Shown piece by piece: positions 4,701 through 25,428 of a DNA stretch of 26,960 bases. Within the stretch, counting starts at the first letter, position 1; each line of letters begins with the position of its first letter. The position numbers and the translations under genes were made by a program. The notes beneath the pieces were generated by a model. It was given only the letters and a program-made list of their open reading frames with translations. It made no database searches and was not told the origin of the DNA. This DNA is from Macrostomum lignano (taxonomy: Eukaryota): contig NIVC01002169.1 in NCBI GenBank assembly GCA_002269645.1, forward strand, positions 1 through 26,960, in the 5' to 3' direction.

Positions 4701-5225
4701 GGCGATTCTTCACTGGGGATTGAGGACGATTCTTCACTGGGGATTTGGGGGCGATTGTTCACTGGGGATTTGAGGGCGATTCTTCACTGGGGATTGAGGA
4801 CGATTCTTCACTGGGGATTTGGGGGCGATTGTTCACTGGGGATTTGAGGGCGATTCTTCACTGGGGATTGAGGGCTATTCTTCACTGGGGATTGAGGGCG
4901 ATTCTTCACTGGGGTTGAGGGCGATTCTTCACTGGGGATTGAGGGCGATTCTTCACTGGGGATTGAGGGCGATTCTTCACTGGGGATTGGGAGAGCGATT
5001 CTTCACTGGGGATTGAGGGCGATTCTTCACTGGGGATTGAGGGCGATTCTTCACTGGGGATTGAGGGCGATTCTTCACTGGGGATTGAGAGGGCGATTCT
5101 TCACTGGGGATTGAGGGCGATTCTTCACTGGAGATTGAGGGCGATTCTTCACTGGGGATTGGGAGAGCGAGTCCTCACTGGGGATTAAGAGGGCGATTCT
5201 TCACTGGGGATTTAAAGGGCGATTT
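1776..5225. repeat. Minisatellite, 23-26-bp unit (TTCTTCACTGGGGATTGAGGGCGA), roughly 140 copies
   Basis: Continuous tandem copies; variation concentrated in the GAGGG segment (GAGAG, GAGTGGG, TGGGG, GAGGA). All ORFs in 1754-5016 are repeat translations. Confidence 0.97.
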
Positions 5226-5461
5226 TTCTAGGAAGGCTAGCAAGTGCCTTATGCAGTCCGTCGAAGTTGAATAAAAATTTAGCGCAGAATAACAGCAATC
5301 ATTTCGACGAACAAACAGGTCTAATGATCTAAGAAGCTTACAAAAATGACTTCAATTCAGCCAAAAAAGTCAATTTCCTGGATTGTTTTTTGTAAAATAC
5401 ATTACGTAGCTTAAAAACCTCATTCTCCTACTAACAGTAGTAGTAGGAGACCTAAAAGCGG

Positions 5462-5574: not shown

Positions 5575-8500
5575 CTGGCAAATTTAGATAATTAGGAAAA
5601 ACGGTATGGAAAAACTGTTACTACTACTTAGGCTCGATACTCGTAGTAGCTCACCAGGCATCATGTGCAGTTCCCGATCAACCTGTTCCCATTTCTGTTG
5701 AGCATCGAACTGCCAGTCTATTAGGAAATTGCCATTGTCTGTCACTACCGGACCCTGTTGGTGAAAGTGTAAGAGGTGCAAGGCAGATGACGGTTCAGAA
5801 TAATCAAATTCGTCTTTTGAGTTGCATCTCCTTTTTCAGAGGCCTGGCATTGCCCTTCTGCGAAGGCATTGCTCTGGGCTGCATGAGAGACATAAATACA
5901 TTTTAGTACCTTTATTCTAGCCTCACATTCTACTTGCTTAGAGTTTTTGACCAAATTATGTACTTGTTTGAATCAAGTGATCTAGAAGCTCAACTATTAA
6001 AATATATGAATAACTGAATCTATGGGTAAGGATAATGTAATTTGTGTCATGCAGAAGTGTCTTACAATAATTTGTATTTTCCTACATATTATAGTGCAAA
6101 AGAGCTTCACTTTTGTAGCATATCTACCGTTTGCTATGTTAGATGCCTGCTCCAATATGATAATGCATTTTATCACAATATTAAATATTGAATTGCAGCT
6201 TTAGCCAAGGAAGCGCCGGATATACGCCGCCCCCCCCCCCAGGCCAGAGAACCTTCATCGTGTTCTGCACCTCGGCAGGGGTGGTGAAGCCAACGACACC
6301 CCAGGACACAAATGCCGCAAACCAAGAGTTCCTGTTTCCACAACTTAACAGCAACGGCCTTCGCAGCCGCATTACGTAACTAATCTCCCGGCTAGACACC
6401 GCGCGCCCTGCGTTCGTCTTTCTTCAAGAGACCAAACTCAGAACATCCGAGGACTTCCACCCACTGCCGGGCTTGTCATCGCCGCCCCGTTGTGACGGAG
6501 TGCCATACGATTCCAATCCGCAGGGCGCAGACCCGGCCAACCGGCATCCTATCCAGCCGCCGTTCACCGAGCAGCCCGTCACACCGCGCGGCCCCGACTG
6601 CTGGCGCGCTGTCTGACCTGGAACGAATCGGACAGGGACACCTGGTGCAGCGGCTGCAGATCCCGTCGCACCGCCTGCACCAATCGTCACCCACCCAGCG
6701 AGACAGAACCAGTGACAGCCGCAAACGCCACCCCCGCGCCCGCCCCTCTACTTGAGCAAGGCCTAGGACCTACCTGCATGCGACGCACCCCCAACAACCG
6801 CGACTACTGCTGCAGCGGCTGCCTTGGCCACCGCAAATGCAGTAGGCGAGGCAGCTTACAGAAAACGAGCGTGGCGGCTAGCCAGCCTGGAAACCAACAT
6901 ATATAAGTGACATCTGCAAGTGTAATAAATATAAACTTTTCACGATTGTTTCCATCTACTATTTTCAGTGGTTTGGAAATGTTTCATTTTGTTGTACATC
7001 TTTTCGTATAATCGTATTTCTGTATGTTCTCCAAATTATCTAGTGGCGCAATCGAACCTATTGAAAGAAAATGTGCATTACATTATCTCAATATTTAATC
7101 AACATTACTTTAATTATTTTAATAATACTTGGCTTTAGTTATAACTTGAAAAGATGCTATTTGCACTTCTGTGTCCCGTCCTTGCACAATCTCGAAATTC
7201 TTCCTACTTTTCTTATTTTCTACTCATTTTGAGAGGCACAAAAAGCGTTGACACCCTGTAATATACATGTTGATGCTAGGACCCTGAATTCAAGATACAC
7301 CGACATTTAAATATGTAGCTAATACAATTTGTAAAAAATGTAAAAAATGAAGCTATACATTTAAATAGCTACAGAGAGGACGCCAGCTACAGATGGGGCG
7401 CCAGCTACAGATGGGCGCCAGCTACAGATGGGCGCCAGCTACAGATGGACGCCAGCTACAGATGGGCGCCAGCTACAGATGGGGCGCCAGCTACAGATGG
7501 GGCGCCAGCTACAGATGGGCGCCAGCTACAGATGGGCGCCAGCTACAGATGGACGCCAGCTACAGGGAGGACGCCAGCTACAGATGGGGCGCCAGCTACA
7601 GATGGGCGCCAGCTACAGATGGGCGCCAGCTACAGATGGGGCGCCAGCTACAGATGGGCGCCAGCTACAGATGGGGCGCCAGCTACAGATGGGCGCCAGC
7701 TACAGATGGGGCGCCAGCTACAGATGGGGCGCCAGCTACAGATGGGCGCCAGCTACAGATGGGCGCCAGCTACAGATGGACGCCAGCTACAGGGAGGACG
7801 CCAGCTACAGATGGGGCGCCAGCTACAGATGGGCGCCAGCTACAGATGGGCGCCAGCTACAGATGGGCGCCAGCTACAGATGGACGCCAGCTACAGGGAG
7901 GACGCCAGCTACAGATGGGGCGCCAGCTACAGATGGGCGCCAGCTACAGATGGACGCCAGCTACAGGGAGGACGCCAGCTACAGATGGGGCGCCAGCTAC
8001 AGATGGGCGCCAGCTACAGATGGGCGCCAGCTACAGATGGGCGCCAGCTACAAATGGGGCGCCAGCTACAGAATTGGCGCCGCTAAAAACTCCTGCTCTT
8101 TCCTAAATCACCGCGTCAGCGCTAACCATTTTGCCAGCGGACTCTCGCAGCACAGCTCGTCCGCCAAATCGCGTCTCAATTTGCCGCTTAACCAGAGCCC
8201 AGGCCATCGGCACAACTTCTATTGGGACGCCGGCGCGCCAGCGTTCGCCAAATTGCCTACTAATTTTAGCTTCATCGCAGACAATTACTAACGAATTCGC
8301 GGCGGTGTCGACGATTTTTTCTTGCAATAGGCAGCCGCCGCCGCCTTTAATTAAGGCCAAATTGGCGTCGACTTCGTCGGCTCCATCGACGGCCCAGTCT
8401 AGAGGTGCGGTGCAGTATTCCAGCTCAGCCAGCGGCATGCCGTGCTCTCTGATTAGCTGCTTTGCCTGCGCAGGGCCAAGAGGGTGGATAAGACACAATG

Positions 8501-9316
8501 AATGCGCGCGTACGAGTACTAGAAGTATGCAGATCCTGCATTCTATAATTTACTCTGATTAAGTACACGAACACGTTACACGTTAAAAGTACCGCCTTAG
8601 CACTTTAAGTGTTGAGGTACACGAGCACTTGGATTAGTTAAGTACACGCGCACTCTAAGCAGTAAATTACACGCGCACTTCAAATATTTAAGTAACACGA
8701 GCACTTGGACTATTTAATCGTAAGTACACACGCACTCTAGGAGTTTAAGTACACGCGCACTTTGAGTGTTTGGGCATACGAGTACTTTAAGTGCTTAAGT
8801 ACACGCGCACTCAAACCTTAAAGTACAACTCAACACTACACTCAATCACAATTAGGACAGAGGAATGAAGAAGTCGTTAATGAATTTGATTTTTATTCAC
8901 AGACCTGATAAGAAGTTGGCACGCATTTAACTGACCAGCTTTTCTGCTTCAAAAGCTCAGCTAAAATAATAGAAGAAAATGAACATTATTAACTTTGAAG
9001 AAATATGCTAAAAATGCGACTTAATATTTGAGCACTTACCAATGCGCTCAACAACAAACACCATGGTTCTACCAGATCCAATACCAATAGTTTGGCAGTT
9101 CTGAAATTATATAGAACACATTGATCAAATTCAACTGAAATGAATCACTTTCCAAACCTGAACTTTGATAACTCATAGCAATAAAACACATTCAGACATA
9201 AAAAAGCAACCAACCTGTAGATTCTCATCCACAGCCATGTTGGCAGCAAGCCGCCTGGCACTGTCTTTCCTGCTAGCAAGTTCACCATTTGTATAACTGC
9301 TATTTGTTGTAGTCAT
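5462..9316 (-). CDS. RPIA: Ribose-5-phosphate isomerase A, 6 coding exons, 256 aa
   Basis: Exons 9316-9215, 9100-9040, 8960-8905, 8465-8127, 5754-5655, 5574-5462; all introns GT-AG with matching phases (0,1,0,0,1); total 771 nt. Motifs GIGSG(R)T, CVPTSYQA, AVDGADEVD, LIKGGGGCLLQEK, GVPIEV, GPVVTDNGNF, PGLVETGLF. An acceptor at 9391-9392 suggests a further upstream exon or leader. Confidence 0.95.
5655..5754 (-). CDS. RPIA: RPIA coding exon 5 (GPVVTDNGNF...LHMMP)
   Basis: GPVVTDNGNFLIDW motif; acceptor CAACAG, donor GTGAGC. Confidence 0.95.
6190..6900 (+). mobile_element. Decayed non-LTR retrotransposon fragment (APE endonuclease N-terminus) in RPIA intron 4
   Basis: GC-rich island; reading 6329-6440 gives FLFPQLNSNGLRSRIT*LISRLDTARPAFVF then, after a 1-nt frameshift, LQETKL, matching the QxNxNGL...LQETK pattern of LINE endonucleases. 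Boundaries approximate. Confidence 0.6.
7367..8084. repeat. Minisatellite, 17/18-bp unit (GGGCGCCAGCTACAGAT[G]), about 40 copies, in RPIA intron 4
   Basis: Direct tandem copies with recurring ACAGGGAGGACGCC variant; ORFs 7393-8291 are repeat translations. Confidence 0.96.
8127..8465 (-). CDS. RPIA: RPIA coding exon 4 (AKQLIREHG...ESAGKM)
   Basis: DGADEVD and IKGGGGCLLQEK catalytic motifs; acceptor GCGCAG, donor GTTAGC. Confidence 0.96.
8561..8830. repeat. Degenerate 25-bp-period array with conserved core AAGTACACGCGCACT in RPIA intron 3
   Basis: Core copies start at 8615, 8640, 8665, 8690, 8722, 8747, 8797 with weaker copies at 8561, ~8772, ~8821. Confidence 0.8.
8905..8960 (-). CDS. RPIA: RPIA coding exon 3 (AELLKQKSWSVKCVPTSYQ)
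   Basis: Acceptor TTTTAG, donor GTCTGT, conserved CVPTS motif, phase fits both neighbours. Confidence 0.92.
9040..9100 (-). CDS. RPIA: RPIA coding exon 2 (NCQTIGIGSGRTMVFVVERI)
   Basis: Acceptor TTTCAG, donor GTAAGT, GIGSG motif; too short for the ORF track. Confidence 0.92.
9215..9316 (-). CDS. RPIA: RPIA coding exon 1 (MTTTNSS...AANMAVDENLQ)
   Basis: ATG at 9316, RpiA-like ARRLAANMAVDE helix, donor CAG|GTTGGT at 9214; start codon choice is inferred. Confidence 0.8.
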
Positions 9317-9910
9317 TTTGAATTGGCCAGTAGTGAAAGCCACAGATATTTGGACTTTAGACTTTGATAAAAATGGTGCTACTGTACCACCTGAAAAAGC
9401 AATCAAGTAACTTAACAAAGTAGCTAAGAAAGTCACTTCTAGGCAAAAATATAAATTATAATAGCTAAAAGTCATAATTTTTTAAAAACTTACTAATCAC
9501 TTTCTTAAACATCTTATATCCTAAAGCCTGAAAAAAGAAAGCAAAACTAATTATTTGATAAATTAAAAAATTGGAAACTTAGACTAAAAATTTAGAAAAT
9601 TAGGCAAGGAAGTAGCTTTTCTGATTAGAACAAACAAGAATCTATATAAACAGTATCCTATCCTATAAAGATAAGATCAATTGGTACACCTATATAACTT
9701 GCTTATATATGCTAGAGATCATAGAAAGATAAATATAGAGGGGGCAAAAAGGCCATGACTATCCTCTTAGCTATGGCCAAAATTTGGGCCATACTTTTTT
9801 GTCTATGTCTATGTAACTATGCATCTTTTCTAATATATAAATTTTGGCCTTGGGTTGTAGTTGTAGTTGCTTAGTATTGTAGCTTGCCTATCTCTCCTAC
9901 ACAATTTTGC

Positions 9911-10874: not shown

Positions 10875-10882
10875 CCTCACTT
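10875..10882 (+). repeat. Target site duplication, left copy (CCTCACTT)
   Basis: Identical 8-mer directly abuts both TIR ends; does not extend to 9 bp. Confidence 0.93.
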
Positions 10883-11129
10883 ACTCCCGTAAATCTAGCC
10901 GCATGCCATCCTCATAAAAAATTTAAATGCTTGCGACAGCTATAAATCTGGATATTTTGCAAAGATTTAGACACTTTATTTATGCAACAGAAGGTTCAAA
11001 GCATTCCATGTACTTGGCTTGTCTGTGGGGAGGCGTTAAAAATTAGTTACGTGCGGATAGCGTGCGGATGGCTTGTTTTTTGGGCTTAGGAATTTTAAGC
11101 TTTGGGCAATTCTTGCGACAGTTGCTGAT
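10883..11129 (+). repeat. Left terminal inverted repeat (247 bp)
   Basis: Begins ACTCCCGTAAATCTAGCCGCATGCC; reverse complement of 25174-25420 with one mismatch seen (10930). Confidence 0.97.
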
Positions 11130-11817
11130 TCTTATAGTCCATCAAGTCCTGTAACCAAGGACAAATTCTCACAACTGGAAGTTCAATGGTTCGGTCAGCA
11201 GAGGACTTTAAAACTTAAAAAAATGTCGAATTTTTTATTTCGCTTGCGACACTCGACTTTTTCAGAGCTGTACATTGCGACAGCTGGCTTTTTCAATTGC
11301 CAGATGTCCAAAGAGTATAATTGAGAAACTGGCACATTTGCGACAGCTTCTTTTGCAAGGATATAAAGTTTTTTGTTTGAACCATAGAAGTCTCCCGGTG
11401 TTACAATTTTTTGTTTTTATTTATAACAACATAGCTATAATTTAATAAAGAAACAGAAAGTACTTTAATGTTTTTATCTTTAGCTCAGTTAAAAATTTGT
11501 TTTATAAAACTAATAAATCAAGTAGTTATATATTATTGCTCTTATTAAAGGATAATTGAAGAAGTGCTAAAATTTAACTTGCAATTGAATGATAACGTAA
11601 CTTTAGAATTACTGCACGTGCTTTCATTTGAGCTATGGGCTGTGACATTAACAGTAGGCTAATTGGCCACTTAGTTATTGACTGTACAATATCGAGTAAC
11701 AAACATTGCTTGATACGTGTTTCTAGGTCTAGCTAGCAGTATTATGATTCATATTTTGTGTTACACTCAATCCACTTTGTAACACATTAACACACGACAC
11801 AATTAAGATAATAATCT

Positions 11818-11862
11818 TTAGTCTAGTCTAGTCTAGTCTAGTATAAGCCTCTTTAGTCTAGT
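11818..11862. repeat. Short (AGTCT)n microsatellite
   Basis: TAGTCTAGTCTAGTCTAGTCTAGT plus one further copy. Confidence 0.7.
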
Positions 11863-12466
11863 GTACACTTTAAAGAGAATATTCAGATTGACTTTTGGAT
11901 TTTTGAAAGTTAAAAGTGATTCACTTTGTAGCTACTCATTTAGTATCGTGGCATGGTACCAAAGACTCCAAAATTTTATAGAGTGCTAAAATATTCTGCC
12001 TTAGTAATATGCTAGCAATATTTTCCTAATCAGCTGCAGACAAGTCACAAAAGATGGCATACAAAGATATTATATAATTGTTTGTTTTTTCTAAATTCAT
12101 ATTGGTTGAATACACTTAGCTCGTAGCTATTCAAAGTAAATAAAATTATCTAGATTGTGTGCTGTGCTCTCTATTATTTTTTCGAATTATTCCAGTCCTA
12201 CATAGATCTAATTTCGTTTTGATGACTTACCAAAAAAGTTTATACTTTTTAAAAACAGATTTATTATTCTCATTATAATTTAGAAATATAGAACTATAAT
12301 AATTGGCAATTGCAGTATTCAGCTCAGTCTGTTATATACAATTTCTCATTAATTGTATATTTATGCGAAACATGGAAACATTTGAAATAATTTAATATTA
12401 TTTGAAAATTAAAAAAATTCAATGAGCCCTCGATAAAACACAACTAACAAAGGGATATTTTTTCCA

Positions 12467-15400
12467 ACTGTGTTTGTGTGCTTATCAAGCTTGTGTCGAT
12501 CTGGAAACAGTTTGCATGCCAAAGCGCAGTAGCACACTCGACTGTGTTTGTGTGCTTATCAAGCTTGTGTCGATCTGGAAACAGTTTGCATGCCAAAGCG
12601 CAGTAGCACACTCGACTGTGTTTGTGTGCTTATCAAGCTTGTGTCGATCTGGAAACAGTTTGCATGCCAAAGCGCAGTAGCACACTCGACTGTGTTTGTG
12701 TGCTTATCAAGCTTGTGTCGATCTGGAAACAGTTTGCATGCCAAAGCGCAGTAGCACACTCGACTGTGTTTGTGTGCTTATCAAGCTTGTGTCGATCTGG
12801 AAACAGTTTGCATGCCAAAGCGCAGTAGCACACTCGACTGTGTTTGTGTGCTTATCAAGCTTGTGTCGATCTGGAAACAGTTTGCATGCCAAAGCGCAGT
12901 AGCACACTCGACTGTGTTTGTGTGCTTATCAAGCTTGTGTCGATCTGGAAACAGTTTGCATGCCAAAGCGCAGTAGCACACTCGACTGTGTTTGTGTGCT
13001 TATCAAGCTTGTGTCGATCTGGAAACAGTTTGCATGCCAAAGCGCAGTAGCACACTCGACTGTGTTTGTGTGCTTATCAAGCTTGTGTCGATCTGGAAAC
13101 AGTTTGCATGCCAAAGCGCAGTAGCACACTCGACTGTGTTTGTGTGCTTATCAAGCTTGTGTCGATCTGGAAACAGTTTGCATGCCAAAGCGCAGTAGCA
13201 CACTCGACTGTGTTTGTGTGCTTATCAAGCTTGTGTCGATCTGGAAACAGTTTGCATGCCAAAGCGCAGTAGCACACTCGACTGTGTTTGTGTGCTTATC
13301 AAGCTTGTGTCGATCTGGAAACAGTTTGCATGCCAAAGCGCAGTAGCACACTCGACTGTGTTTGTGTGCTTATCAAGCTTGTGTCGATCTGGAAACAGTT
13401 TGCATGCCAAAGCGCAGTAGCACACTCGACTGTGTTTGTGTGCTTATCAAGCTTGTGTCGATCTGGAAACAGTTTGCATGCCAAAGCGCAGTAGCACACT
13501 CGACTGTGTTTGTGTGCTTATCAAGCTTGTGTCGATCTGGAAACAGTTTGCATGCCAAAGCGCAGTAGCACACTCGACTGTGTTTGTGTGCTTATCAAGC
13601 TTGTGTCGATCTGGAAACAGTTTGCATGCCAAAGCGCAGTAGCACACTCGACTGTGTTTGTGTGCTTATCAAGCTTGTGTCGATCTGGAAACAGTTTGCA
13701 TGCCAAAGCGCAGTAGCACACTCGACTGTGTTTGTGTGCTTATCAAGCTTGTGTCGATCTGGAAACAGTTTGCATGCCAAAGCGCAGTAGCACACTCGAC
13801 TGTGTTTGTGTGCTTATCAAGCTTGTGTCGATCTGGAAACAGTTTGCATGCCAAAGCGCAGTAGCACACTCGACTGTGTTTGTGTGCTTATCAAGCTTGT
13901 GTCGATCTGGAAACAGTTTGCATGCCAAAGCGCAGTAGCACACTCGACTGTGTTTGTGTGCTTATCAAGCTTGTGTCGATCTGGAAACAGTTTGCATGCC
14001 AAAGCGCAGTAGCACACTCGACTGTGTTTGTGTGCTTATCAAGCTTGTGTCGATCTGGAAACAGTTTGCATGCCAAAGCGCAGTAGCACACTCGACTGTG
14101 TTTGTGTGCTTATCAAGCTTGTGTCGATCTGGAAACAGTTTGCATGCCAAAGCGCAGTAGCACACTCGACTGTGTTTGTGTGCTTATCAAGCTTGTGTCG
14201 ATCTGGAAACAGTTTGCATGCCAAAGCGCAGTAGCACACTCGACTGTGTTTGTGTGCTTATCAAGCTTGTGTCGATCTGGAAACAGTTTGCATGCCAAAG
14301 CGCAGTAGCACACTCGACTGTGTTTGTGTGCTTATCAAGCTTGTGTCGATCTGGAAACAGTTTGCATGCCAAAGCGCAGTAGCACACTCGACTGTGTTTG
14401 TGTGCTTATCAAGCTTGTGTCGATCTGGAAACAGTTTGCATGCCAAAGCGCAGTAGCACACTCGACTGTGTTTGTGTGCTTATCAAGCTTGTGTCGATCT
14501 GGAAACAGTTTGCATGCCAAAGCGCAGTAGCACACTCGACTGTGTTTGTGTGCTTATCAAGCTTGTGTCGATCTGGAAACAGTTTGCATGCCAAAGCGCA
14601 GTAGCACACTCGACTGTGTTTGTGTGCTTATCAAGCTTGTGTCGATCTGGAAACAGTTTGCATGCCAAAGCGCAGTAGCACACTCGACTGTGTTTGTGTG
14701 CTTATCAAGCTTGTGTCGATCTGGAAACAGTTTGCATGCCAAAGCGCAGTAGCACACTCGACTGTGTTTGTGTGCTTATCAAGCTTGTGTCGATCTGGAA
14801 ACAGTTTGCATGCCAAAGCGCAGTAGCACACTCGACTGTGTTTGTGTGCTTATCAAGCTTGTGTCGATCTGGAAACAGTTTGCATGCCAAAGCGCAGTAG
14901 CACACTCGACTGTGTTTGTGTGCTTATCAAGCTTGTGTCGATTGGAAACAGTTTGCATGCCAAAGCGCAGTAGCACACTCGACTGTGTTTGTGTGCTTAT
15001 CAAGCTTGTGTCGATCTGGAAACAGTTTGCATGCCAAAGCGCAGTAGCACACTCGACTGTGTTTGTGTGCTTATCAAGCTTGTGTCGATTGGAAACAGTT
15101 TGCATGCCAAAGCGCAGTAGCACACTCGACTGTGTTTGTGTGCTTATCAAGCTTGTGTCGATCTGGAAACAGTTTGCATGCCAAAGCGCAGTAGCACACT
15201 CGACTGTGTTTGTGTGCTTATCAAGCTTGTGTCGATCTGGAAACAGTTTGCATGCCAAAGCGCAGTAGCACACTCGACTGTGTTTGTGTGCTTATCAAGC
15301 TTGTGTCGATCTGGAAACAGTTTGCATGCCAAAGCGCAGTAGCACACTCGACTGTGTTTGTGTGCTTATCAAGCTTGTGTCGATTGGAAACAGTTTGCAT

Positions 15401-18400
15401 GCCAAAGCGCAGTAGCACACTCGACTGTGTTTGTGTGCTTATCAAGCTTGTGTCGATCTGGAAACAGTTTGCATGCCAAAGCGCAGTAGCACACTCGACT
15501 GTGTTTGTGTGCTTATCAAGCTTGTGTCGATTGGAAACAGTTTGCATGCCAAAGCGCAGTAGCACACTCGACTGTGTTTGTGTGCTTATCAAGCTTGTGT
15601 CGATCTGGAAACAGTTTGCATGCCAAAGCGCAGTAGCACACTCGACTGTGTTTGTGTGCTTATCAAGCTTGTGTCGATCTGGAAACAGTTTGCATGCCAA
15701 AGCGCAGTAGCACACTCGACTGTGTTTGTGTGCTTATCAAGCTTGTGTCGATCTGGAAACAGTTTGCATGCCAAAGCGCAGTAGCACACTCGACTGTGTT
15801 TGTGTGCTTATCAAGCTTGTGTCGATTTGGAAACAGTTTGCATGCCAAAGCGCAGTAGCACACTCGACTGTGTTTGTGTGCTTATCAAGCTTGTGTCGAT
15901 CTGGAAACAGTTTGCATGCCAAAGCGCAGTAGCACACTCGACTGTGTTTGTGTGCTTATCAAGCTTGTGTCGATTGGAAACAGTTTGCATGCCAAAGCGC
16001 AGTAGCACACTCGACTGTGTTTGTGTGCTTATCAAGCTTGTGTCGATCTGGAAACAGTTTGCATGCCAAAGCGCAGTAGCACACTCGACTGTGTTTGTGT
16101 GCTTATCAAGCTTGTGTCGATCTGGAAACAGTTTGCATGCCAAAGCGCAGTAGCACACTCGACTGTGTTTGTGTGCTTATCAAGCTTGTGTCGATCTGGA
16201 AACAGTTTGCATGCCAAAGCGCAGTAGCACACTCGACTGTGTTTGTGTGCTTATCAAGCTTGTGTCGATCTGGAAACAGTTTGCATGCCAAAGCGCAGTA
16301 GCACACTCGACTGTGTTTGTGTGCTTATCAAGCTTGTGTCGATCTGGAAACAGTTTGCATGCCAAAGCGCAGTAGCACACTCGACTGTGTTTGTGTGCTT
16401 ATCAAGCTTGTGTCGATCTGGAAACAGTTTGCATGCCAAAGCGCAGTAGCACACTCGACTGTGTTTGTGTGCTTATCAAGCTTGTGTCGATCTGGAAACA
16501 GTTTGCATGCCAAAGCGCAGTAGCACACTCGACTGTGTTTGTGTGCTTATCAAGCTTGTGTCGATCTGGAAACAGTTTGCATGCCAAAGCGCAGTAGCAC
16601 ACTCGACTGTGTTTGTGTGCTTATCAAGCTTGTGTCGATCTGGAAACAGTTTGCATGCCAAAGCGCAGTAGCACACTCGACTGTGTTTGTGTGCTTATCA
16701 AGCTTGTGTCGATCTGGAAACAGTTTGCATGCCAAAGCGCAGTAGCACACTCGACTGTGTTTGTGTGCTTATCAAGCTTGTGTCGATCTGGAAACAGTTT
16801 GCATGCCAAAGCGCAGTAGCACACTCGACTGTGTTTGTGTGCTTATCAAGCTTGTGTCGATCTGGAAACAGTTTGCATGCCAAAGCGCAGTAGCACACTC
16901 GACTGTGTTTGTGTGCTTATCAAGCTTGTGTCGATCTGGAAACAGTTTGCATGCCAAAGCGCAGTAGCACACTCGACTGTGTTTGTGTGCTTATCAAGCT
17001 TGTGTCGATCTGGAAACAGTTTGCATGCCAAAGCGCAGTAGCACACTCGACTGTGTTTGTGTGCTTATCAAGCTTGTGTCGATCTGGAAACAGTTTGCAT
17101 GCCAAAGCGCAGTAGCACACTCGACTGTGTTTGTGTGCTTATCAAGCTTGTGTCGATCTGGAAACAGTTTGCATGCCAAAGCGCAGTAGCACACTCGACT
17201 GTGTTTGCGTGCTTATCAAGCTTGTGTCGATCTGGAAACAGTTTGCATGCCAAAGCGCAGTAGCACACTCGACTGTGTTTGTGTGCTTATCAAGCTTGTG
17301 TCGATCTGGAAACAGTTTGCATGCCAAAGCGCAGTAGCACACTCGACTGTGTTTGTGTGCTTATCAAGCTTGTGTCGATCTGGAAACAGTTTGCATGCCA
17401 AAGCGCAGTAGCACACTCGACTGTGTTTGTGTGCTTATCAAGCTTGTGTCGATCTGGAAACAGTTTGCATGCCAAAGCGCAGTAGCACACTCGACTGTGT
17501 TTGTGTGCTTATCAAGCTTGTGTCGATCTGGAAACAGTTTGCATGCCAAAGCGCAGTAGCACACTCGACTGTGTTTGTGTGCTTATCAAGCTTGTGTCGA
17601 TCTGGAAACAGTTTGCATGCCAAAGCGCAGTAGCACACTCGACTGTGTTTGTGTGCTTATCAAGCTTGTGTCGATCTGGAAACAGTTTGCATGCTAAAGC
17701 GCAGTAGCACACTCGACTGTGTTTGTGTGCTTATCAAGCTTGTGTCGATCTGGAAACAGTTTGCATGCCAAAGCGCAGTAGCACACTCGACTGTGTTTGT
17801 GTGCTTATCAAGCTTGTGTCGATCTGGAAACAGTTTGCATGCCAAAGCGCAGTAGCACACTCGACTGTGTTTGTGTGCTTATCAAGCTTGTGTCGATCTG
17901 GAAACAGTTTGCATGCCAAAGCGCAGTAGCACACTCGACTGTGTTTGTGTGCTTATCAAGCTTGTGTCGATCTGGAAACAGTTTGCATGCCAAAGCGCAG
18001 TAGCACACTCGACTGTGTTTGTGTGCTTATCAAGCTTGTGTCGATCTGGAAACAGTTTGCATGCCAAAGCGCAGTAGCACACTCGACTGTGTTTGTGTGC
18101 TTATCAAGCTTGTGTCGATCTGGAAACAGTTTGCATGCCAAAGCGCAGTAGCACACTCGACTGTGTTTGTGTGCTTATCAAGCTTGTGTCGATCTGGAAA
18201 CAGTTTGCATGCCAAAGCGCAGTAGCACACTCGACTGTGTTTGTGTGCTTATCAAGCTTGTGTCGATCTGGAAACAGTTTGCATGCCAAAGCGCAGTAGC
18301 ACACTCGACTGTGTTTGTGTGCTTATCAAGCTTGTGTCGATCTGGAAACAGTTTGCATGCCAAAGCGCAGTAGCACACTCGACTGTGTTTGTGTGCTTAT

Positions 18401-18461
18401 CAAGCTTGTGTCGATCTGGAAACAGTTTGCATGCCAAAGCGCAGTAGCACACTCGACTGTG
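12467..18461. repeat. Tandem array of a 74-bp unit, 81 copies, inside the transposon
   Basis: Unit ACTGTGTTTGTGTGCTTATCAAGCTTGTGTCGATCTGGAAACAGTTTGCATGCCAAAGCGCAGTAGCACACTCG; 8 variant units noted; degenerate partial copy to ~18482. No spacers, so not CRISPR. The many 66/68-aa ORFs are artefacts. Confidence 0.98.
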
Positions 18462-18651
18462 CTTATGTGCTTTATCAATCTTAATATGAACCTTCTCAGA
18501 GCAGGCTTCTTTTTAGTGTGTTTTTATCTAAACTTCATTCTTTATACTGGTATTACAATTGGTTATTGTCAATTCTATTCCATGTAATTGGTTATTGTCA
18601 TCACAAATCAGACAGCTTATTACTTTAAAAATTGTGGCCTTTTCTTTTCAG

Positions 18652-19488
18652 GCCTTTATCAAGTATCCGTTCGTTGTTTTTGAGGGCAACGGCCCTTTGC
18701 CTGACAATGCTCCCGAGCTCGATTTGGTTGTCGGCGTGTTGGTCGATGTTTCAGATGTTCGTGAAGCAGCAAAAGTATTGAATCTTGAATTGCAAAAGGC
18801 GCCGATTCGGTGTGTTCGAGGGATGGACGTGAAGTATCTTTCTGAAGATGGAATTGCCCTGGCACTTTTTAACGGCGTTGCCGTTTTCCGAAAGCGGCTG
18901 GTGGAAGGAGAGAACAGGTTAGATAAAACAAAACGCTTACAGGCGGTTGAGGCTGGTCGTGTTTGGTTATTAGAGCAAAATTGGAAAATTTCACCTGGCA
19001 ATTTTTCAGCGGATTATCTCGCCAAGGAGCACATTGAAAAGGCCTTAAAGCATTTTGAGCTTGCGGCTTCTATGGCTTCACCTGAAATGGTGCGCAGCGT
19101 AACGTTTGGAATCATTTGTGCTCGACAAGCCTTGCATGATTTTGAAGCATGTCTTAAGGGCATTACTCCGAAAGTTGTTGATCAATGCTACGAGGAAAAT
19201 GGTTCCTTGTATGCCAGTGCTGCAAATAGCGACGTGCAGGATAAGGAAAAGAGGCGCAAGGAGGAGGAGGAGGAAGCAAAGCGCAAGGAGGAGGAAGCAA
19301 AGCGCAAGGAGGAGGAAGCGAAGCGCAAGGAGGAGGCGGGGGCGAAGCGTAGAGTTGCAGGAAAGCAAAGCATGGAGCAAGCAAAGAATTCAAAGGCTAG
19401 TTCCAGCACGAAGCGTACTCGTAAATGTATGAATATAGTCAGCAAAGGCAGCACAACCCGGTCAAGTAAAAGGATACGACAAGATTGA
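18652..19488 (+). CDS. Transposon-borne second gene, unknown protein (exon of 278 codons; upstream exon not located)
   Basis: Long open frame 18559-19488; strong acceptor TTTTCTTTTCAG at 18640-18651, phase 0; globular-looking N-part, (EEEAKRK)n charged helix, basic C-tail. No family recognised. Confidence 0.65.
   Translation, partial: AFIKYPFVVFEGNGPLPDNAPELDLVVGVLVDVSDVREAAKVLNLELQKAPIRCVRGMDVKYLSEDGIALALFNGVAVFRKRLVEGENRLDKTKRLQAVEAGRVWLLEQNWKISPGNFSADYLAKEHIEKALKHFELAASMASPEMVRSVTFGIICARQALHDFEACLKGITPKVVDQCYEENGSLYASAANSDVQDKEKRRKEEEEEAKRKEEEAKRKEEEAKRKEEAGAKRRVAGKQSMEQAKNSKASSSTKRTRKCMNIVSKGSTTRSSKRIRQD
19251..19340 (+). repeat. 21-bp coding repeat (GAGGAGGAAGCAAAGCGCAAG) giving EEEAKRK
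   Basis: Three to four in-frame copies; explains the overlapping shadow ORFs at 19078-19454. Confidence 0.85.
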
Positions 19489-20719
19489 TCAATTTAATCT
19501 CCGGTGAGTTGCAAATATGCTTTAATTTTCAGGTATTGTAAACTGCAGTTTTTCTTTTAATGTTAACCGATTAGCTGTTAACTATGTAGTACAATAGGTT
19601 ACGAAAAACTGTTTCCCTCTCATGGATGAAGAAATATAATGGATTGCCAATCGGACCCAGTTACTTTTGGTTCTTCGTCGCTTTGTTTCCACTCCCCACA
19701 GTGCCTTTTCATTGTCTGAGAGCGGCTGGTCTTCGATTTTCTATCCTTGATTTTGGAATCATTGGAAAGCTAAATCTGAGTCCATTTCTCTAGTGCAAAG
19801 TCACGTGATGATGTATGGACGCATTGCCTCAGTCCATGAAAAAGCACGGAGGAGCGGAGGCAAAGCGGCTAAAAGCGAGAAAAGAACTGAGTTCGATTAC
19901 AAATCCAGTCTATTCCATCATCGATGTTCCAGCTAAGTAAATACAGTTTGTCGACGACAGTCGGCAAAACATCACAAATGACAAACCCAATTTGATCATT
20001 CTTCATTTACCAAGTCCTGATTGCTACGAGTGATACGGCTCGTATGAAAACTTTATTTACGAGATTTTGATGTACATCATTGCTAGAACATGTGTTTGTA
20101 TAAGATTTACTAAAATCACGCCATCACAAAACCATTCCAGTGCGACGATACGATGCGATGAGAAGTGTTACAAAAAAGCTACGATTCATCAGTTTTTTCT
20201 GGAATTAAAAACAATTGCAGCCATAACAAAAACAAACCTTTGAAGTTTTGATTTGGGATTTGTGAAAGCCTCAGCGTTTGTTTGATAGTGCTATGAAAAA
20301 CTATGGTTATTAATGCTTGAGTAATCGACTATCAAATTAAATTTTCATTCTTCCTAAAATTAAATATTCTTCTTAAGTTTTTTACCCCGCTTTTCATTTT
20401 TAATTAGCAATTTATAATAATATACATGATATTCTGCACATCTTGGTCTGTAGTCAATACAAAAAATGTGCGTCTATGGAAAGGAAAAGAGATACAAGTC
20501 CAATAACAATTCCTTCAAAAAATAACGATAATAGTAAGATTATAAGCACCTACCTACTGTTGTTAGTCTTTGTATTTCTTTAACTTTATTTTCCGTGATT
20601 CTTTAAACAAACTTTCACTTAAAAATCATAGTTCCGTGCTTCGTCAGACGTACGAATTGAAAAATTATTTACAAGGAACTCATAGGAGTAACTTTCGAAA
20701 ACATGTATTGGCAAACTCT

Positions 20720-20990
20720 GACCTCTGTCTCTGCCTCTCTCTACGTCCCTCGGATCCTTTAAAACTTTTATCTTCTCTTCTGTTTCCTATTTTCTCTCTC
20801 TCTCATCTCATCTCTTCTTTTATATCTTCTCTCTCCCCTGTTCTCTCGTCGATCTTCCCTCACCACCTCTCTTCTCTCTCGTCTCTACTCTCTCATATCT
20901 CCTTTTTTCCTCTTTCATCTCTCCCATCTCATCTGTTTTCTCCTCTCTCTCCTTCTCCCCTCTCTTCTCACTTCTCCTCTTCTCTCACAG
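20720..20990. repeat. CT-rich polypyrimidine low-complexity tract
   Basis: Irregular (CT)/(CTT) run between the two convergent genes; ORF 20570-21010 is its Ser/Leu/Pro shadow. Confidence 0.85.
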
Positions 20991-21093
20991 TAAAAATATG
21001 TATGAACTAACGGAGTTTTTTGACGAGGATCTGCCATTGAGTTTTTTCGTAAGTGATCATACATGCACAATGTTTTTCAACGAAACCGATCGT

Positions 21094-24000
21094 CTAATTG
21101 TTATTTGTTCTCGTAGCTCCGCACCCGCAAAATCCAAGAGTGTAAATCAAAAGACTTGGTCTTCCCCGGCTCCTTTGGCGATTTTCCTTAGAAAAGTGAA
21201 GCTGTCCTAGTTCGCTTGATGCAGCATCATCATAAATGTAACTAGAATCGCCTCGATTGAGACGCCCGAAGAAATGTCCTGTCACGGCTGTCGTACAGCA
21301 GAGATTGTAGCTGAAAAAAATTGGCAGGTACAATGAGTGTAGGGCACACAAAACATGTTGAAAGAAGTACATGCATGTACTTCAAGATATGTTTCAATAG
21401 TAAGCCCCTTCAAATGTTCATAGGAGTACATCAGAGTTTGGTGGTGCGCACGATGAACACTTACACTACACAGTACTACTAATACTGGATAAAAACTTCA
21501 ACAGTCCAAAGTCATCACACTTTCAAGAGCCAAAAATTCCTTACTGAATATTTCGCTCCTCTGGAAATGGATGCACGACGTCGTGTGGTGGAAGAATCTC
21601 CCGTCCGTTAGCTGCATCGGGGATGCCGATCACCAAAACCGGTGGCGGGAAATTGACAAACCGAGGGTGGTGTACGTAAAGCGACGCATAATCGCAAGTA
21701 CTGCATTCGACACATCTGTCACCCGAGGTAAAAAATTGCAGGAGAAAGTCCTCTGGAGACATAAAAGTCACATGGCTACTAAATGACGATAGACGTTCCG
21801 GCACGGGAAGAACGAGTTGATAAAAACGCCTCTCCTCGTTAGACGAGCAGTAAGGGCAAACAAAGCGTTGAGCGATTGCGACGATGTCTCCAAGCACCCA
21901 AGTACAGACATCCAGTGCTCCTTGGTACAGATTGATATCAATCTCTTTGGAAGTACTGGATCTACGCCTTGTGATGGCCCCATGTCGATGTAGTTCTAGA
22001 CATCGCAATAGCAGCCTAGCTCGAGCGAAATGGGCGCTTTCTTGAGTAAATTATTGTACAGCTGCATGCAAAAAGTCCACCAACGGAGAAAAATTATCCG
22101 GAAGTTGCTGAACTGCTTGGCGAAAATGCTGATCATCTCTCATTGCGAATGTGAGGGCCGTCAATAAGTGATCCACAGTGCATGCGTTGTACACATGAAC
22201 TGTAAGTACTTCATCATTAAATGGAACCTTTCGAGAAGTTGAATAATTTTTCATTAGAGAAAAGTTACTTGATACCCGTAGAGATGGAGCACATACCGAA
22301 GCTCGTGCATTTAAGGTGGGACATGTTGAATAACGAACTTTCCGCCTTTTGTTAGTGACGACAGAAAAATGAGAACGGTCATCTGTTATATTCTCTTCCT
22401 CCTCCATGGGAGTGAATGGACTTTCAGGTTTTCGCTGTACAGGCGGCCTTGAACTGTCGTAAGGCGGTCTTGACCTGTCAGGCGGCCGTGAACTGCCGCT
22501 GCCAGGCGGCCGTGAACTACCGCTGCCAGGCGGCCGTGAACTGGCGCTAACAGGCGGCCCTAAACTGCTGCTGCCCGGCGGCCCTGAAACGTCACTGACT
22601 GGCGGCCTTGAATTGCCGCTGCCAGGCGGCCGTGAACTGGCGCTAACAGGCGGCCGTGAACTGTCGTCAGGCGGCCCTGAACTGCCGCTGCCCGGCGGCC
22701 CTGAAGCGTCACTGACTGGCGGCCTTGAATTGCCGCTGCCAGGCGGCCGTGAACTTCCGCTAACAGGCGGCATTGAACTGTCGGCTGGAGGCATTGAACT
22801 GTCGTCAGGCGGCACTGAACTGTCGGCTGGAGGCATTGAACTGTCGTCAGGCGGCACTGAACTGTCGGCTGGAGGCATTGAACTGTCGTCAGGCGGCATT
22901 GAACTGCCGACAGGCGGCATTGTACTGCCGGCAGGCGGCACTGAACTGCCGGCAGGCGGCATTGTACTGTCGTCAGGCGGCCCTGAACTGCCGCTGCCCG
23001 GCGGCCCTGAAACGCCACTGACTGGCGGCCTTGAACTGCCGCTGCCAGGCGGCCGTGAACTGTCGTCAGATGGCCCCGAACTGTCATTTATCTCCGAACT
23101 GCCTTCTGATTCATCAAGACATTGATAATCTCGCTGTTGCATAAAAACTCCGAGAGGACGCAGAAATTGATTGTAGGTTCCAGGAAGAACACTGTGCAGT
23201 TTCCTGATGAAAACGTGTGTGCTTAAGCAATGCCCCTCGAGTAGATGGTTTGTTACTATTCCGACACAGCGCTCTGTTCCTCCTTCTTGAAAGCAATGTG
23301 TCGAGCGATCGACAACGGAAAAACTCTCCTCGCGAGCATATCTGCACGGCTCTGACATGATGCTCGTAAAAAGTGGCAAATACGGCAACATAACGTCGAA
23401 AAGCTTGCGTGACAATTCAGGGCAGTAAAATGGATTGGGCATAGAGCGAAAGTTTTCTACTGCGGAAGCAGAAAATTTATTCTCCAGGTCCTGATGCACT
23501 TCCTGGAACATCTGCCAAAACGGTGATGACCTTTTGATTGTTTCGTCTGGCTTTGCGTACAGCCATTCCTCTCGAGGAATAAATTCTCCGCTTTCATTCA
23601 GCTCGCCGGCGATGGTAGCATCCAAATACACTTTTGGAGATACTGCTTCACCTTCAATCCGTAGTTCTTCTATTAGAGCACTCATTTCCTCCAATGTCGG
23701 TGCAAGAAGAACAGCAAAAAAGGCTGTAACAATGTTCTTAGTCTCGCTGAGACTGGTTGAATGCACTAGAGAACGAAATGCGTCTTTCCAAAAGAGCGAA
23801 ATTCGATTGTCGCGACAAGCCTTAACAACGGACCAGCTGCAAAACTCGTGAACGATATGGCTTCTACCAAGTCCGACGAGTGGAAATTTACGCAGCTCCC
23901 GTACTGAAAATGAACGACGAAGAATGGAACAGCATAGTCTCAGAAATGGGAGAATGTCCATTCCATGAAGACCGTAGATAAGAGCAGACAGACTTGGAAT

Positions 24001-25098
24001 GTTGAAGTCTGTGACTGCCTGCCGAACTACGAGGCCTGTGACAGATTTCCTTACCGAAGTTAGGAACGTGTCGACAGCAAATTTCAGCGTTGATTTCGTC
24101 TGCGAGGATGTGACTACAAGAAGAATCGGTACTGGCGCTTCTCCATTAACAGGGTGTCGCAGAGCTAGTATGTGGAGATAAGCTCCATGACCATCCACAA
24201 GAGGAGCTCCTGTAGAGTCCAGACCAATTTCAATCGGCAAACTGCGGCGGTGTAGTATTTTGAGCAGAGTGATTGCCTGGTCGAAATACAGAACGGCAAA
24301 GCGCACATGGCCAAGTCCTGGCTCAACATTAATATGTCTCACAAAGGGGGGATCTAACTGTTCTCCTTGTACGATTATGTCCAAAATAGGATCGCAAAAC
24401 AGCTTTTCTCTAAGTCGTTCTTGAGATGCTGCGGTCCTCAGAACGCTCGAAGACGGAACTTCAGGAGTTAGTCCCCCGGCAGCTAGTCTTGCTGAAACTA
24501 GATAGGCATTACTATCATCTACTCTTTTAGCCAAGTCTTTTCGCCGTTCACCTCTGAGAGGGCGTGGTTCTATAACATGCGGTACAATTGGTTGAAGTGG
24601 TTTCAGAATCCAAACAAGCCGATTCTCTTTTGACTTTAGTTTGAACGAAGTCTTGCATGTTACAACACGGCAGTATAAATCTGCAGAAACCTCGCCAGTA
24701 CTTATTGTAATTCTACTTCGCTGCATGCATAAACAACAAGACAACATCGAGGAAAAGTTAGGCAGGACTTTATCCTGCCAGTTAGGGCACAACTGACCAT
24801 TGTCGCCCAGCAAATCTGATTGCACTTTTACGGTGAAAATAGGCACATTTTCTCTACAATTGGATGTACAAGGCGTCGCCCTAAAACTCAACATTCGAGT
24901 AATTGCTATGAAAGAAAATGCACACATAAAACAGTACAAAATAGTAAGAGCTTACTCTTCAGGATCTTCATCTTCATCCGCTTCACACTCCTGATTGTCA
25001 GGGCCGACAGTGTGCAACTGAAATGCGTTTCTTCGAAACTGGTCGTATAGCCAACGTCTGTTAGAAAAAGTGTCCTCAAAACCAAGCAAACGGCACAT
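21094..25098 (-). CDS. MULE/NOF-like DDE transposase fused to USP(C19)-like cysteine protease domain; 3 exons, one internal in-frame TAA
   Basis: Exons 25098-24956, 24880-21545, 21310-21094 (3696 nt, 1232 codons); introns GTAAGC..TTTTAG and GTAAGG..TTTCAG, both phase 2. Putative D (LDSTG, 24219), D (VTDF, 24009), xxxH (GRSH, 23859), YLPLFT, E (GGTER, 23274). Protease motifs NAC (22182), two CxxC, PPPVLVI, GHF (21276), YDD (21231). TAA at 22053-22051. Confidence 0.8.
22440..23085 (-). repeat. In-frame 24-bp-based repeats encoding Pro/Gly/Ser/Asp linker (SSRPPGSG, SSMPPADS)
   Basis: All unit lengths preserve frame within the transposase ORF; shadow ORFs at 22560-23125. Confidence 0.88.
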
Positions 25099-25173
25099 TC
25101 TGGACCAAACAGTTTCAGCTGTTCTCGGGCCGGGTAGGGGCCCCTCAAGTTCTGATCGCAAAATGCTACCCTG

Positions 25174-25420
25174 ATCAGCAACTGTCGCAAGAATTGCCCA
25201 AAGCTTAAAATTCCTAAGCCCAAAAAACAAGCCATCCGCACGCTATCCGCACGTAACTAATTTTTAACGCCTCCCCACAGACAAGCCAAGTACATGGAAT
25301 GCTTTGAACCTTCTGTTGCATAAATAAAGTGTCTAAATCTTTGCAAAATATCCAGATTTATAGCTGTCGCAAACATTTAAATTTTTTATGAGGATGGCAT
25401 GCGGCTAGATTTACGGGAGT
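25174..25420 (-). repeat. Right terminal inverted repeat (247 bp)
   Basis: Ends GGCATGCGGCTAGATTTACGGGAGT, immediately followed by the TSD. Confidence 0.97.
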
Positions 25421-25428
25421 CCTCACTT
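25421..25428 (+). repeat. Target site duplication, right copy (CCTCACTT)
   Basis: Identical to 10875-10882. Confidence 0.93.

Follow-up and report, generated by a model that had tools for sequence, protein, structure and literature searches.

A candidate, highly diverged USP-like tail on the transposase of a Macrostomum lignano DNA transposon with long terminal inverted repeats

Structure of the transposase gene and its C-terminal tail

The window analyzed here is a stretch of 26,960 nucleotides from the flatworm Macrostomum lignano (assembly GCA_002269645.1, contig NIVC01002169.1, positions 1 to 26,960 of the forward strand). Inverted-repeat detection and reading of the flanks identified within this window a DNA transposon of 14,538 bp, which is bordered by long terminal inverted repeats (TIRs) and a target-site duplication and carries a transposase gene on the minus strand (Table 1). 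An earlier note on this DNA had claimed that the gene continues, hidden by a stop codon and an intron, into a C-terminal domain of the ubiquitin-specific protease (USP, peptidase C19) type. In the following, the structure of this tail is described and its relationship to the USPs is weighed.

The transposase is encoded by a minus-strand open reading frame (ORF) of 962 codons (24939-22054, by translation), which is closed by an in-frame TAA. Directly behind this stop codon, the same frame remains open for another 168 codons. The chance of a stop-free run of this length in the frame of the upstream ORF was estimated by us at about 1e-4 from the base composition of the window, and the stretch following the TAA is therefore taken to be former coding sequence of the same protein. 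In addition, alignments with USPs cross the stop uninterrupted, both with BLASTP and with MAFFT (DFLHAAVQ-stop-FTQESAHF versus DFLTETGENFQHGRQEDAHEF). The TAA most probably arose by nonsense mutation in the present copy of the element. Since it precedes all motifs of the tail except the candidate catalytic Cys, the tail domain is absent from the product without readthrough, and this copy makes at most a transposase lacking that domain unless the stop codon is read through. Several other explanations for the stop were considered and rejected. A tiny intron excising the TAA would have to use GT...AG candidates of 19-44 nt, which lack a pyrimidine tract, and the USP alignments pass through the stop. 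Readthrough is disfavored by the context of the TAA, which has T as the next base, and a ciliate-type genetic code does not fit the base composition of the window.

The frame of the exon-2 part is closed by a stop codon that overlaps the GTAAGG donor of a predicted phase-2 intron. Removal of the intron joins CA/C to a His codon (the slash marks the junction) and leads from NIH directly to YNL (NIH/YNL), so that the spliced product reads ...ERNI-H-YNLCCTTAVTGHFFGRLNRGDSSYIYDD...RPSLLIYTL.... An alternative acceptor near position 21381 is likewise in frame and was rejected, as its pyrimidine tract is weak and its use would add a hydrophobic insert. The anatomy given in the earlier note was thus borne out: the peptide strings and coordinates quoted for the three pieces of the tail are correct by translation, the phase-2 intron, predicted from signals, has canonical GT-AG borders and restores the frame at a His codon, and the tail represents a C-terminal extension of the transposase ORF, the frame of which continues over 168 codons past the TAA. 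The spacing from His to Asp, given there as 15 residues, was measured as 15-16.

Table 1. Features of the transposon, its transposase gene and the USP-like tail. Positions are those of the window.
Feature	Position	Strand	Remarks
Candidate Cys box YNACTVDHLLTAL	22191-22153	-	Cys920 at codon 22182-22180; within the last ~100 residues of the ORF
In-frame TAA	22053-22051	-	truncates the protein 42 codons past candidate Cys920, ahead of all other USP-like motifs
Exon-2 part of tail	22050-21545	-	168 open codons, same frame as the 962-codon ORF
Exon-2 motifs	FTQESAHF 22050-22027; FVCPYCSS 21864-21841; CVECSTC 21714-21694; PPPVLVI 21648-21628	-	
Predicted intron	21544-21311	-	234 nt, phase 2, GT-AG, GTAAGG...TTTTTTTCAG; predicted from consensus signals and USP alignments across the junction
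Last exon	21310-21094	-	72 codons; encodes HYNLCCTTAVTGHFFGRLNRGDSSYIYDD...PSLLIYTL; TAG 21096-21094
Last-exon motifs	YNL...TGHFF, His1144 at 21276-21274; YIYDD, Asp1159/1160 at 21231-21226; PSLLIY	-	His-to-Asp distance 15-16
Transposase core	24939-23098	-	residues 1-614; first ATG at 24927
Candidate acidic triad of transposase	IGLDSTG 24228-24208; AVTDFN 24018-24001; EGGTERCVGIV 23286-23254	-	read from motifs only
Pro/Ser-rich low-complexity linker	23100-22420	-	residues ~614-840, ~230 residues, SSRPPGSG-like
Whole element	10883-25420	-	TIRs and 8-bp target-site duplication CCTCACTT at 10875-10882 and 25421-25428
Left TIR	10883-11129		247 bp, 100% complementary to right TIR
Right TIR	25174-25420		247 bp, perfect counterpart of left TIR
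Internal minisatellite	12467-18482		74-bp unit, 81 copies, 99% identical; near left end of element
Second ORF of element	18559-19488	+	309 residues, Lys/Glu-rich repeat tail; convergent with transposase gene

Similarity of the tail to ubiquitin-specific proteases

With the exon-2 part as query, HMMER was run exhaustively over 1.84 billion representative proteins and returned two matches, one of which was a junk translation of a tandem repeat. The second, P0003, comprises three tandem USP42/36-like catalytic domains and was matched at the zinc-finger region with an E-value of 2.2e-4, a value that is inflated by the summing of three stretches of ~14 bits each, so that the match lacks significance when taken alone. 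The sole real family found by this search was the one that had been named beforehand, and USPs make up a very small fraction of the library. When the tail was compared by BLASTP with one unit of P0003, a collinear alignment of 227 residues was obtained (32 bits, pairwise E 7e-6). The three domains of P0003 are nearly identical, its nearest relatives are bird USP42-like proteins, and it is probably a merged gene model of a tandem array; tandem repeats of this kind inflate full-sequence E-values in HMMER searches.

For profile comparisons, a USP reference of 31 sequences was assembled from the P0003 unit, USP36, 6tbm_Q and Ubp8 (from PDB alignments) and 27 giant-virus USP genes from single-gene loci. 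A hidden Markov model (HMM) of these sequences, run by hmmsearch with filters off, aligned the fingers and the His box of the tail at a score that was reached by 4 of 3000 shuffles, and in the His box GGHYtaivk...WyeynD was paired with TGHFFGRLN-RGDSSYIYDD. Alignment of the single tail sequence to the 31-sequence profile by hhalign (P 5.3e-4, 139 aligned columns) extended from the first CxxC over PPVLVI, FP and YNL to GHF and DD, and hence across the splice junction. HMMs of single blocks were ranked against the 733 stop-to-stop six-frame fragments of the window. Here, exon 2 came first with the finger block (6.5 bits, the next best fragment reaching 2.3), and the last exon ranked fourth with the His block.

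Individual motifs were located by ungapped position-specific scoring matrices, which were scanned over ~26,000 (26,226) six-frame windows. The His window ranked 3rd, the second zinc knuckle (ZnB) 8th, the candidate Cys box YNACTVDHLLTAL 23rd of 26,226 (log-odds -3.3), PxVL 37th, the terminal motif 40th and QESAHF 216th. In addition, the order of the motifs was scored by dynamic programming as a chain of eight USP motifs in family order, in which the tail reached 17.5. This value was attained by none of 3000 shuffles (mean -22.5, standard deviation 8.0, maximum 6.9), by none of 3792 natural windows of concatenated six-frame fragments (maximum 9.8) and by one of 2000 permuted motif orders; the reversed sequence scored -4.7. 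The boundaries of the blocks and the set of motifs were fixed after the alignments had been viewed, which introduces some bias into these scores.

Taken motif by motif, CPYC and CVEC match the zinc-binding cysteines of the USP fingers and PPPVLVI matches P-x-[VI]-L, in agreement between phmmer, HMMER and hhalign, while the KRF motif is absent. YNL...TGHFF...YIYDD was aligned to the USP His box by both HMMER and hhalign. Each of the 31 reference USPs carries the Cys, the His and an Asp at +17 without exception; in the tail, the proposed sites are occupied by Cys, His and Asp-Asp. The tail and the USPs (PF00443; USP36/USP42, Ubp8, giant-virus USPs) share one motif order, namely a candidate Cys helix, Q-x-x-A-H-F, two CxxC pairs, PxVLxI, FP, YxL, GH[YF], DD and LLxY. 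Of the complete USP order that the earlier note had read into the tail, the fingers, PxVLxI, the His box, the Asp and the terminal LLxY were found to be collinear with USPs by HMMER, hhalign and the chain score; the Cys box was recovered at the level of the motif only, and no family threshold was reached. Support for USP likeness is, from the sequence comparisons, concentrated in fingers and palm. We consider it probable that the tail is a true, highly diverged relative of the USPs, at least in its fingers-palm part.

Points against the USP relationship and alternative explanations

A number of results weigh against this relationship. In Pfam, including the UCH family (PF00443), no match at E-values up to 10 was obtained, whether the query was the spliced domain or any one of the three pieces. 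Likewise, phmmer against PDB sequences retrieved no USP with the whole domain or with the three pieces, and the matches that did occur (P2X, T-cell receptor, CTCF, NOD1 CARD and gluconolactonase, E 0.3-4) are attributed to chance. A word-indexed search of 5.8 billion clusters with the tail domain returned nothing. Against an HMM of 119 bird USP42-like proteins, the tail scored no better than shuffles, pairwise phmmer comparisons with USP36, Ubp8 and 6tbm_Q were not above shuffles, and neither was a Smith-Waterman alignment to an averaged-BLOSUM profile (z = 1.2). As to the chain score, left-out true USPs reached 48-237 versus 17.5 for the tail. Since this score lies well below that of true USPs, the tail is a twilight-zone relative, and the sequence failed to attain formal membership in the family. 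The loop from YxL to GH is ~6 residues shorter than in USPs, and the tail is known from one sequence, so that it offers no evidence from conservation. AlphaFold modeling of the exon-2 piece alone was uninformative (predicted local distance difference test, pLDDT, 38).

These failures to detect the tail by Pfam or in the PDB, along with the several non-significant scores and the inflation of the P0003 match by tandem triplication, would also be expected if the tail were an unrelated Cys-rich zinc-ribbon domain of the transposase family in which USP-like motifs occur by chance. C-terminal zinc fingers are frequent in transposases, an example being the PHD finger of Rehavkus (PMC6446971). However, the likeness reaches beyond the zinc ribbon, as PxVLxI, FP, YxL, GH[YF], DD and LLxY follow in order, and the chain score of the tail was reached neither by any of the shuffles nor by any of the natural windows. 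In addition, Pfam scans of the tail and its pieces matched no PHD or other zinc-finger family. An unrelated zinc ribbon thus appears quite improbable.

In the N-terminal third of the putative catalytic domain, the Cys box and thumb blocks were left unaligned by HMMER and hhalign, and the MAFFT global alignment favors a register 13 residues upstream (KVPF at 22230), which places a Pro in the catalytic column. The strict form of the PROSITE-type USP Cys and His box patterns is unmatched by the tail, and the H-x-G loop before GH is missing. The candidate Cys box YNACTVDHLLTAL contains N-x-C and is the best-scoring Cys-box position in the tail despite its negative log-odds. In comparison with USPs, the tail is without the GLxNxGN glycines and the Gln of the Cys box, has a shorter loop before GH and is fused to a transposase. 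It is conceivable that the tail is a catalytically dead, USP-derived module without a true Cys box, serving the transposase in ubiquitin binding, zinc binding or protein interaction. The restriction of the profile alignments to the region from fingers to palm, the Pro in the MAFFT register, the absence of the conserved glycines and of the Asn five residues ahead of the Cys, and the shortened loop before GH would all fit such a module. On the other hand, a Cys preceded by N-x occupies the position that scores best for the Cys box and stands in the correct order, and both the His and the Asp-Asp are kept at the spacing of USPs. We regard a dead module as an unlikely explanation.

Finally, the tail could stem from a host USP gene, a piece of which was captured by the transposon, as in Pack-MULE-type transduplication, and is now decaying, non-functional and in frame by accident. 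The intron within the domain and the premature stop are in line with a captured fragment, and animal DNA transposons of this general type do capture pieces of host genes (PMC8277862). However, a recent capture should still match Pfam UCH, which the tail does not, and the 168 and 72 open codons are continuous with the transposase ORF by way of a long linker and are interrupted by only one stop codon. A captured host fragment is accordingly very improbable.

Possible function and comparison with known transposons

In the most probable explanation, the element is a cut-and-paste DNA transposon, the ancestral gene of which encoded one protein of ~1,200 residues. In this protein, a DDE-type transposase core would have been followed by a disordered linker rich in Pro and Ser and, at the C-terminus, by a domain of ~290 residues. 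The latter would be a very divergent relative of peptidase C19 with zinc-ribbon fingers, a PxVLxI strand, GH[YF], DD ~16 residues further on and a terminal LLxY, and with a USP-like fold in which a Cys at the head of the first helix, the candidate catalytic residue, is probably retained. The intact protein would, by analogy with Ulp1 in Mutator-like elements (MULEs) and Ginger1 and with OTU and VTD in Helitrons, strip ubiquitin or a ubiquitin-like (Ubl) modifier from its substrates. These would likely be the transposase, or else chromatin and repair factors in the vicinity, and removal of the modifier would stabilize the transposase or ease transposition.

That the tail of intact copies is an active Cys-His-Asp isopeptidase is only about half as probable, in our estimate, as the relationship to USPs. 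The isopeptidase activity and the protection from silencing that the earlier note suggested are speculative at this stage, as is self-processing of the polyprotein, for which the analysis provided no support. As a tentative and possible reading, a lineage of long-TIR, minisatellite-bearing transposons may carry an active, highly diverged USP-type deubiquitinase or Ubl protease. This enzyme would be fused to the transposase, and its targets would be either the transposase or ubiquitinated repair factors or chromatin where excision takes place. If this were true, DNA transposons would have recruited a class of Ub/Ubl protease four times independently, with Ulp1, OTU and VTD as the earlier cases.

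Several ubiquitin and Ubl proteases have been described on DNA transposons, including Ulp1 in MULEs and Ginger1, OTU in Ginger1 and Helitrons, and VTD deubiquitinases in Helentrons (PMC2836005; PMC9741609). For VTDs, deubiquitinase activity has been proven, and the usual proposal for transposon-borne proteases is that they free the transposase, or else chromatin and repair factors, of ubiquitin or Ubl modifiers and thereby stabilize the transposition machinery (PMC2836005; PMC9741609). Similar to these elements, the transposon described here carries a C-terminal or accessory domain that is a candidate Ub/Ubl-specific cysteine protease. The protease family is a different one, and Pfam scans gave no Peptidase_C48 or OTU match. 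The order of the catalytic residues differs as well, being His-Asp-Cys in Ulp1 and including an Asp-x-His motif in VTD, whereas the tail has Cys...His...Asp. Among the transposon-borne Ulp1, OTU and VTD proteases, activity has been demonstrated for the VTD class alone, and the USP-type tail, if real, would offer a further system in which the substrate of such proteases can be tested.

A fusion of C19 and transposase domains is less unprecedented than the earlier note implied. In Trichomonas vaginalis, XP_001314237.1 combines a peptidase C19 domain with a transposase_11 (IS5-like) domain (PMC2836005). As described for that protein, and compared here by description only, a USP-type domain and a DDE transposase thus occur on one polypeptide, as in the element analyzed here. 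The two differ in that the T. vaginalis protein belongs to another transposase family, whereas the present element shows no Pfam transposase match, long TIRs and an 8-bp target-site duplication. Furthermore, the C19 domain of T. vaginalis is recognizable by CDD, whereas the tail is not by Pfam.

With regard to its overall architecture, the element resembles Rehavkus and foldback-type MULE-related transposons (PMC6446971; bioRxiv 10.1101/2024.12.02.626372), which, by description, likewise have long TIRs, a big tandem array and a single large transposase. The resemblance, also by description, extends to a C-terminal part encoded by repeats and to an animal-type gene with introns. In contrast, the target-site duplication measures 8 bp here and 9 bp in Rehavkus (PMC6446971), the array of the present element is one-sided and lies outside the TIRs, and Pfam scans identified no PHD finger, a domain reported for Rehavkus (PMC6446971). 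In the literature that was searched, no element with long TIRs and minisatellites was found to carry a USP-like tail. That DNA transposons bear Ub/Ubl proteases is already known, and a USP-like tail on this type of element would be new; its identification is plausible, yet unproven.

A USP-type domain on a different and poorly described transposase family would favor the view that cut-and-paste and rolling-circle elements generally require deubiquitination. As the tail escapes Pfam through its divergence, the annotation of transposons may be missing similar domains. With its disrupted reading frame, the present copy is of limited practical use.

Transposase core and linker

The assignment of the core as a transposase is based on the placement of the ORF between TIRs with a target-site duplication, on D...D...E-like motifs and on one relative. 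A word-indexed protein search with the core retrieved this single relative, P0001, from the Logan assemblies, and core residues 54-600 share 29% identity with P0001 and the ORF located just upstream of it on L001. Pfam gave no match for the 614-residue core nor for P0001, and accordingly no MULE domain was detected. A joint profile of both sequences gave no match to PDB structures, and AlphaFold modeling of the core from the two-sequence alignment reached a pLDDT of 37.6. No relatives of the transposase or of the tail domain were found in the metagenome, viral and prokaryote genome collections that were searched.

Near the N-terminus of the transposase (~24560-24650, minus strand), a C-x4-C-x25-H pattern occurs, and both of its Cys as well as its His align with those of the Logan relative (L001 133-741). 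The pattern resembles the WRKY/GCM1-type zinc fingers of MULE transposases, and the motif is present in two sequences only. Between the core and the USP-like tail, the linker is coded by a tandem repeat of 21/24/42 bp within the transposase ORF (arrays at 22440-23085).

Further features of the element and its surroundings

The two TIR arms of 247 bp are identical, and the insertion of the element is therefore taken to be very recent; the perfect TIRs point to recent movement of this copy, which was possibly mobilized in trans. Searches for a second copy of the element and for exact-protein records of the window ORFs returned none. The internal array of 74-bp units occupies 6 kb on the left side only, without an inverted counterpart on the right. 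The convergent ORF of 309 residues gave no match in a Pfam scan and may be a second gene of the transposon. Within the left TIR and the adjacent subterminal region, the 9-mer TTGCGACAG occurs four times (10931-10939, 11113-11121, 11275-11283 and 11338-11346) and could be a binding motif of the transposase.

The window as a whole is eukaryotic and contains many minisatellites. Outside the element, such arrays are located at 1-732, 1776-5228 and 7367-8085, with units of 28 bp, 26 bp (138 copies) and 17 bp and a strong GC skew. On the minus strand, positions 8103-8498 were identified as a host exon of ribose-5-phosphate isomerase A (PF06026, E 7e-36), possibly with a further one at 9173-9475 on the same strand, and the transposon lies ~1.4-2.4 kb upstream of the ribose-5-phosphate isomerase A exon.

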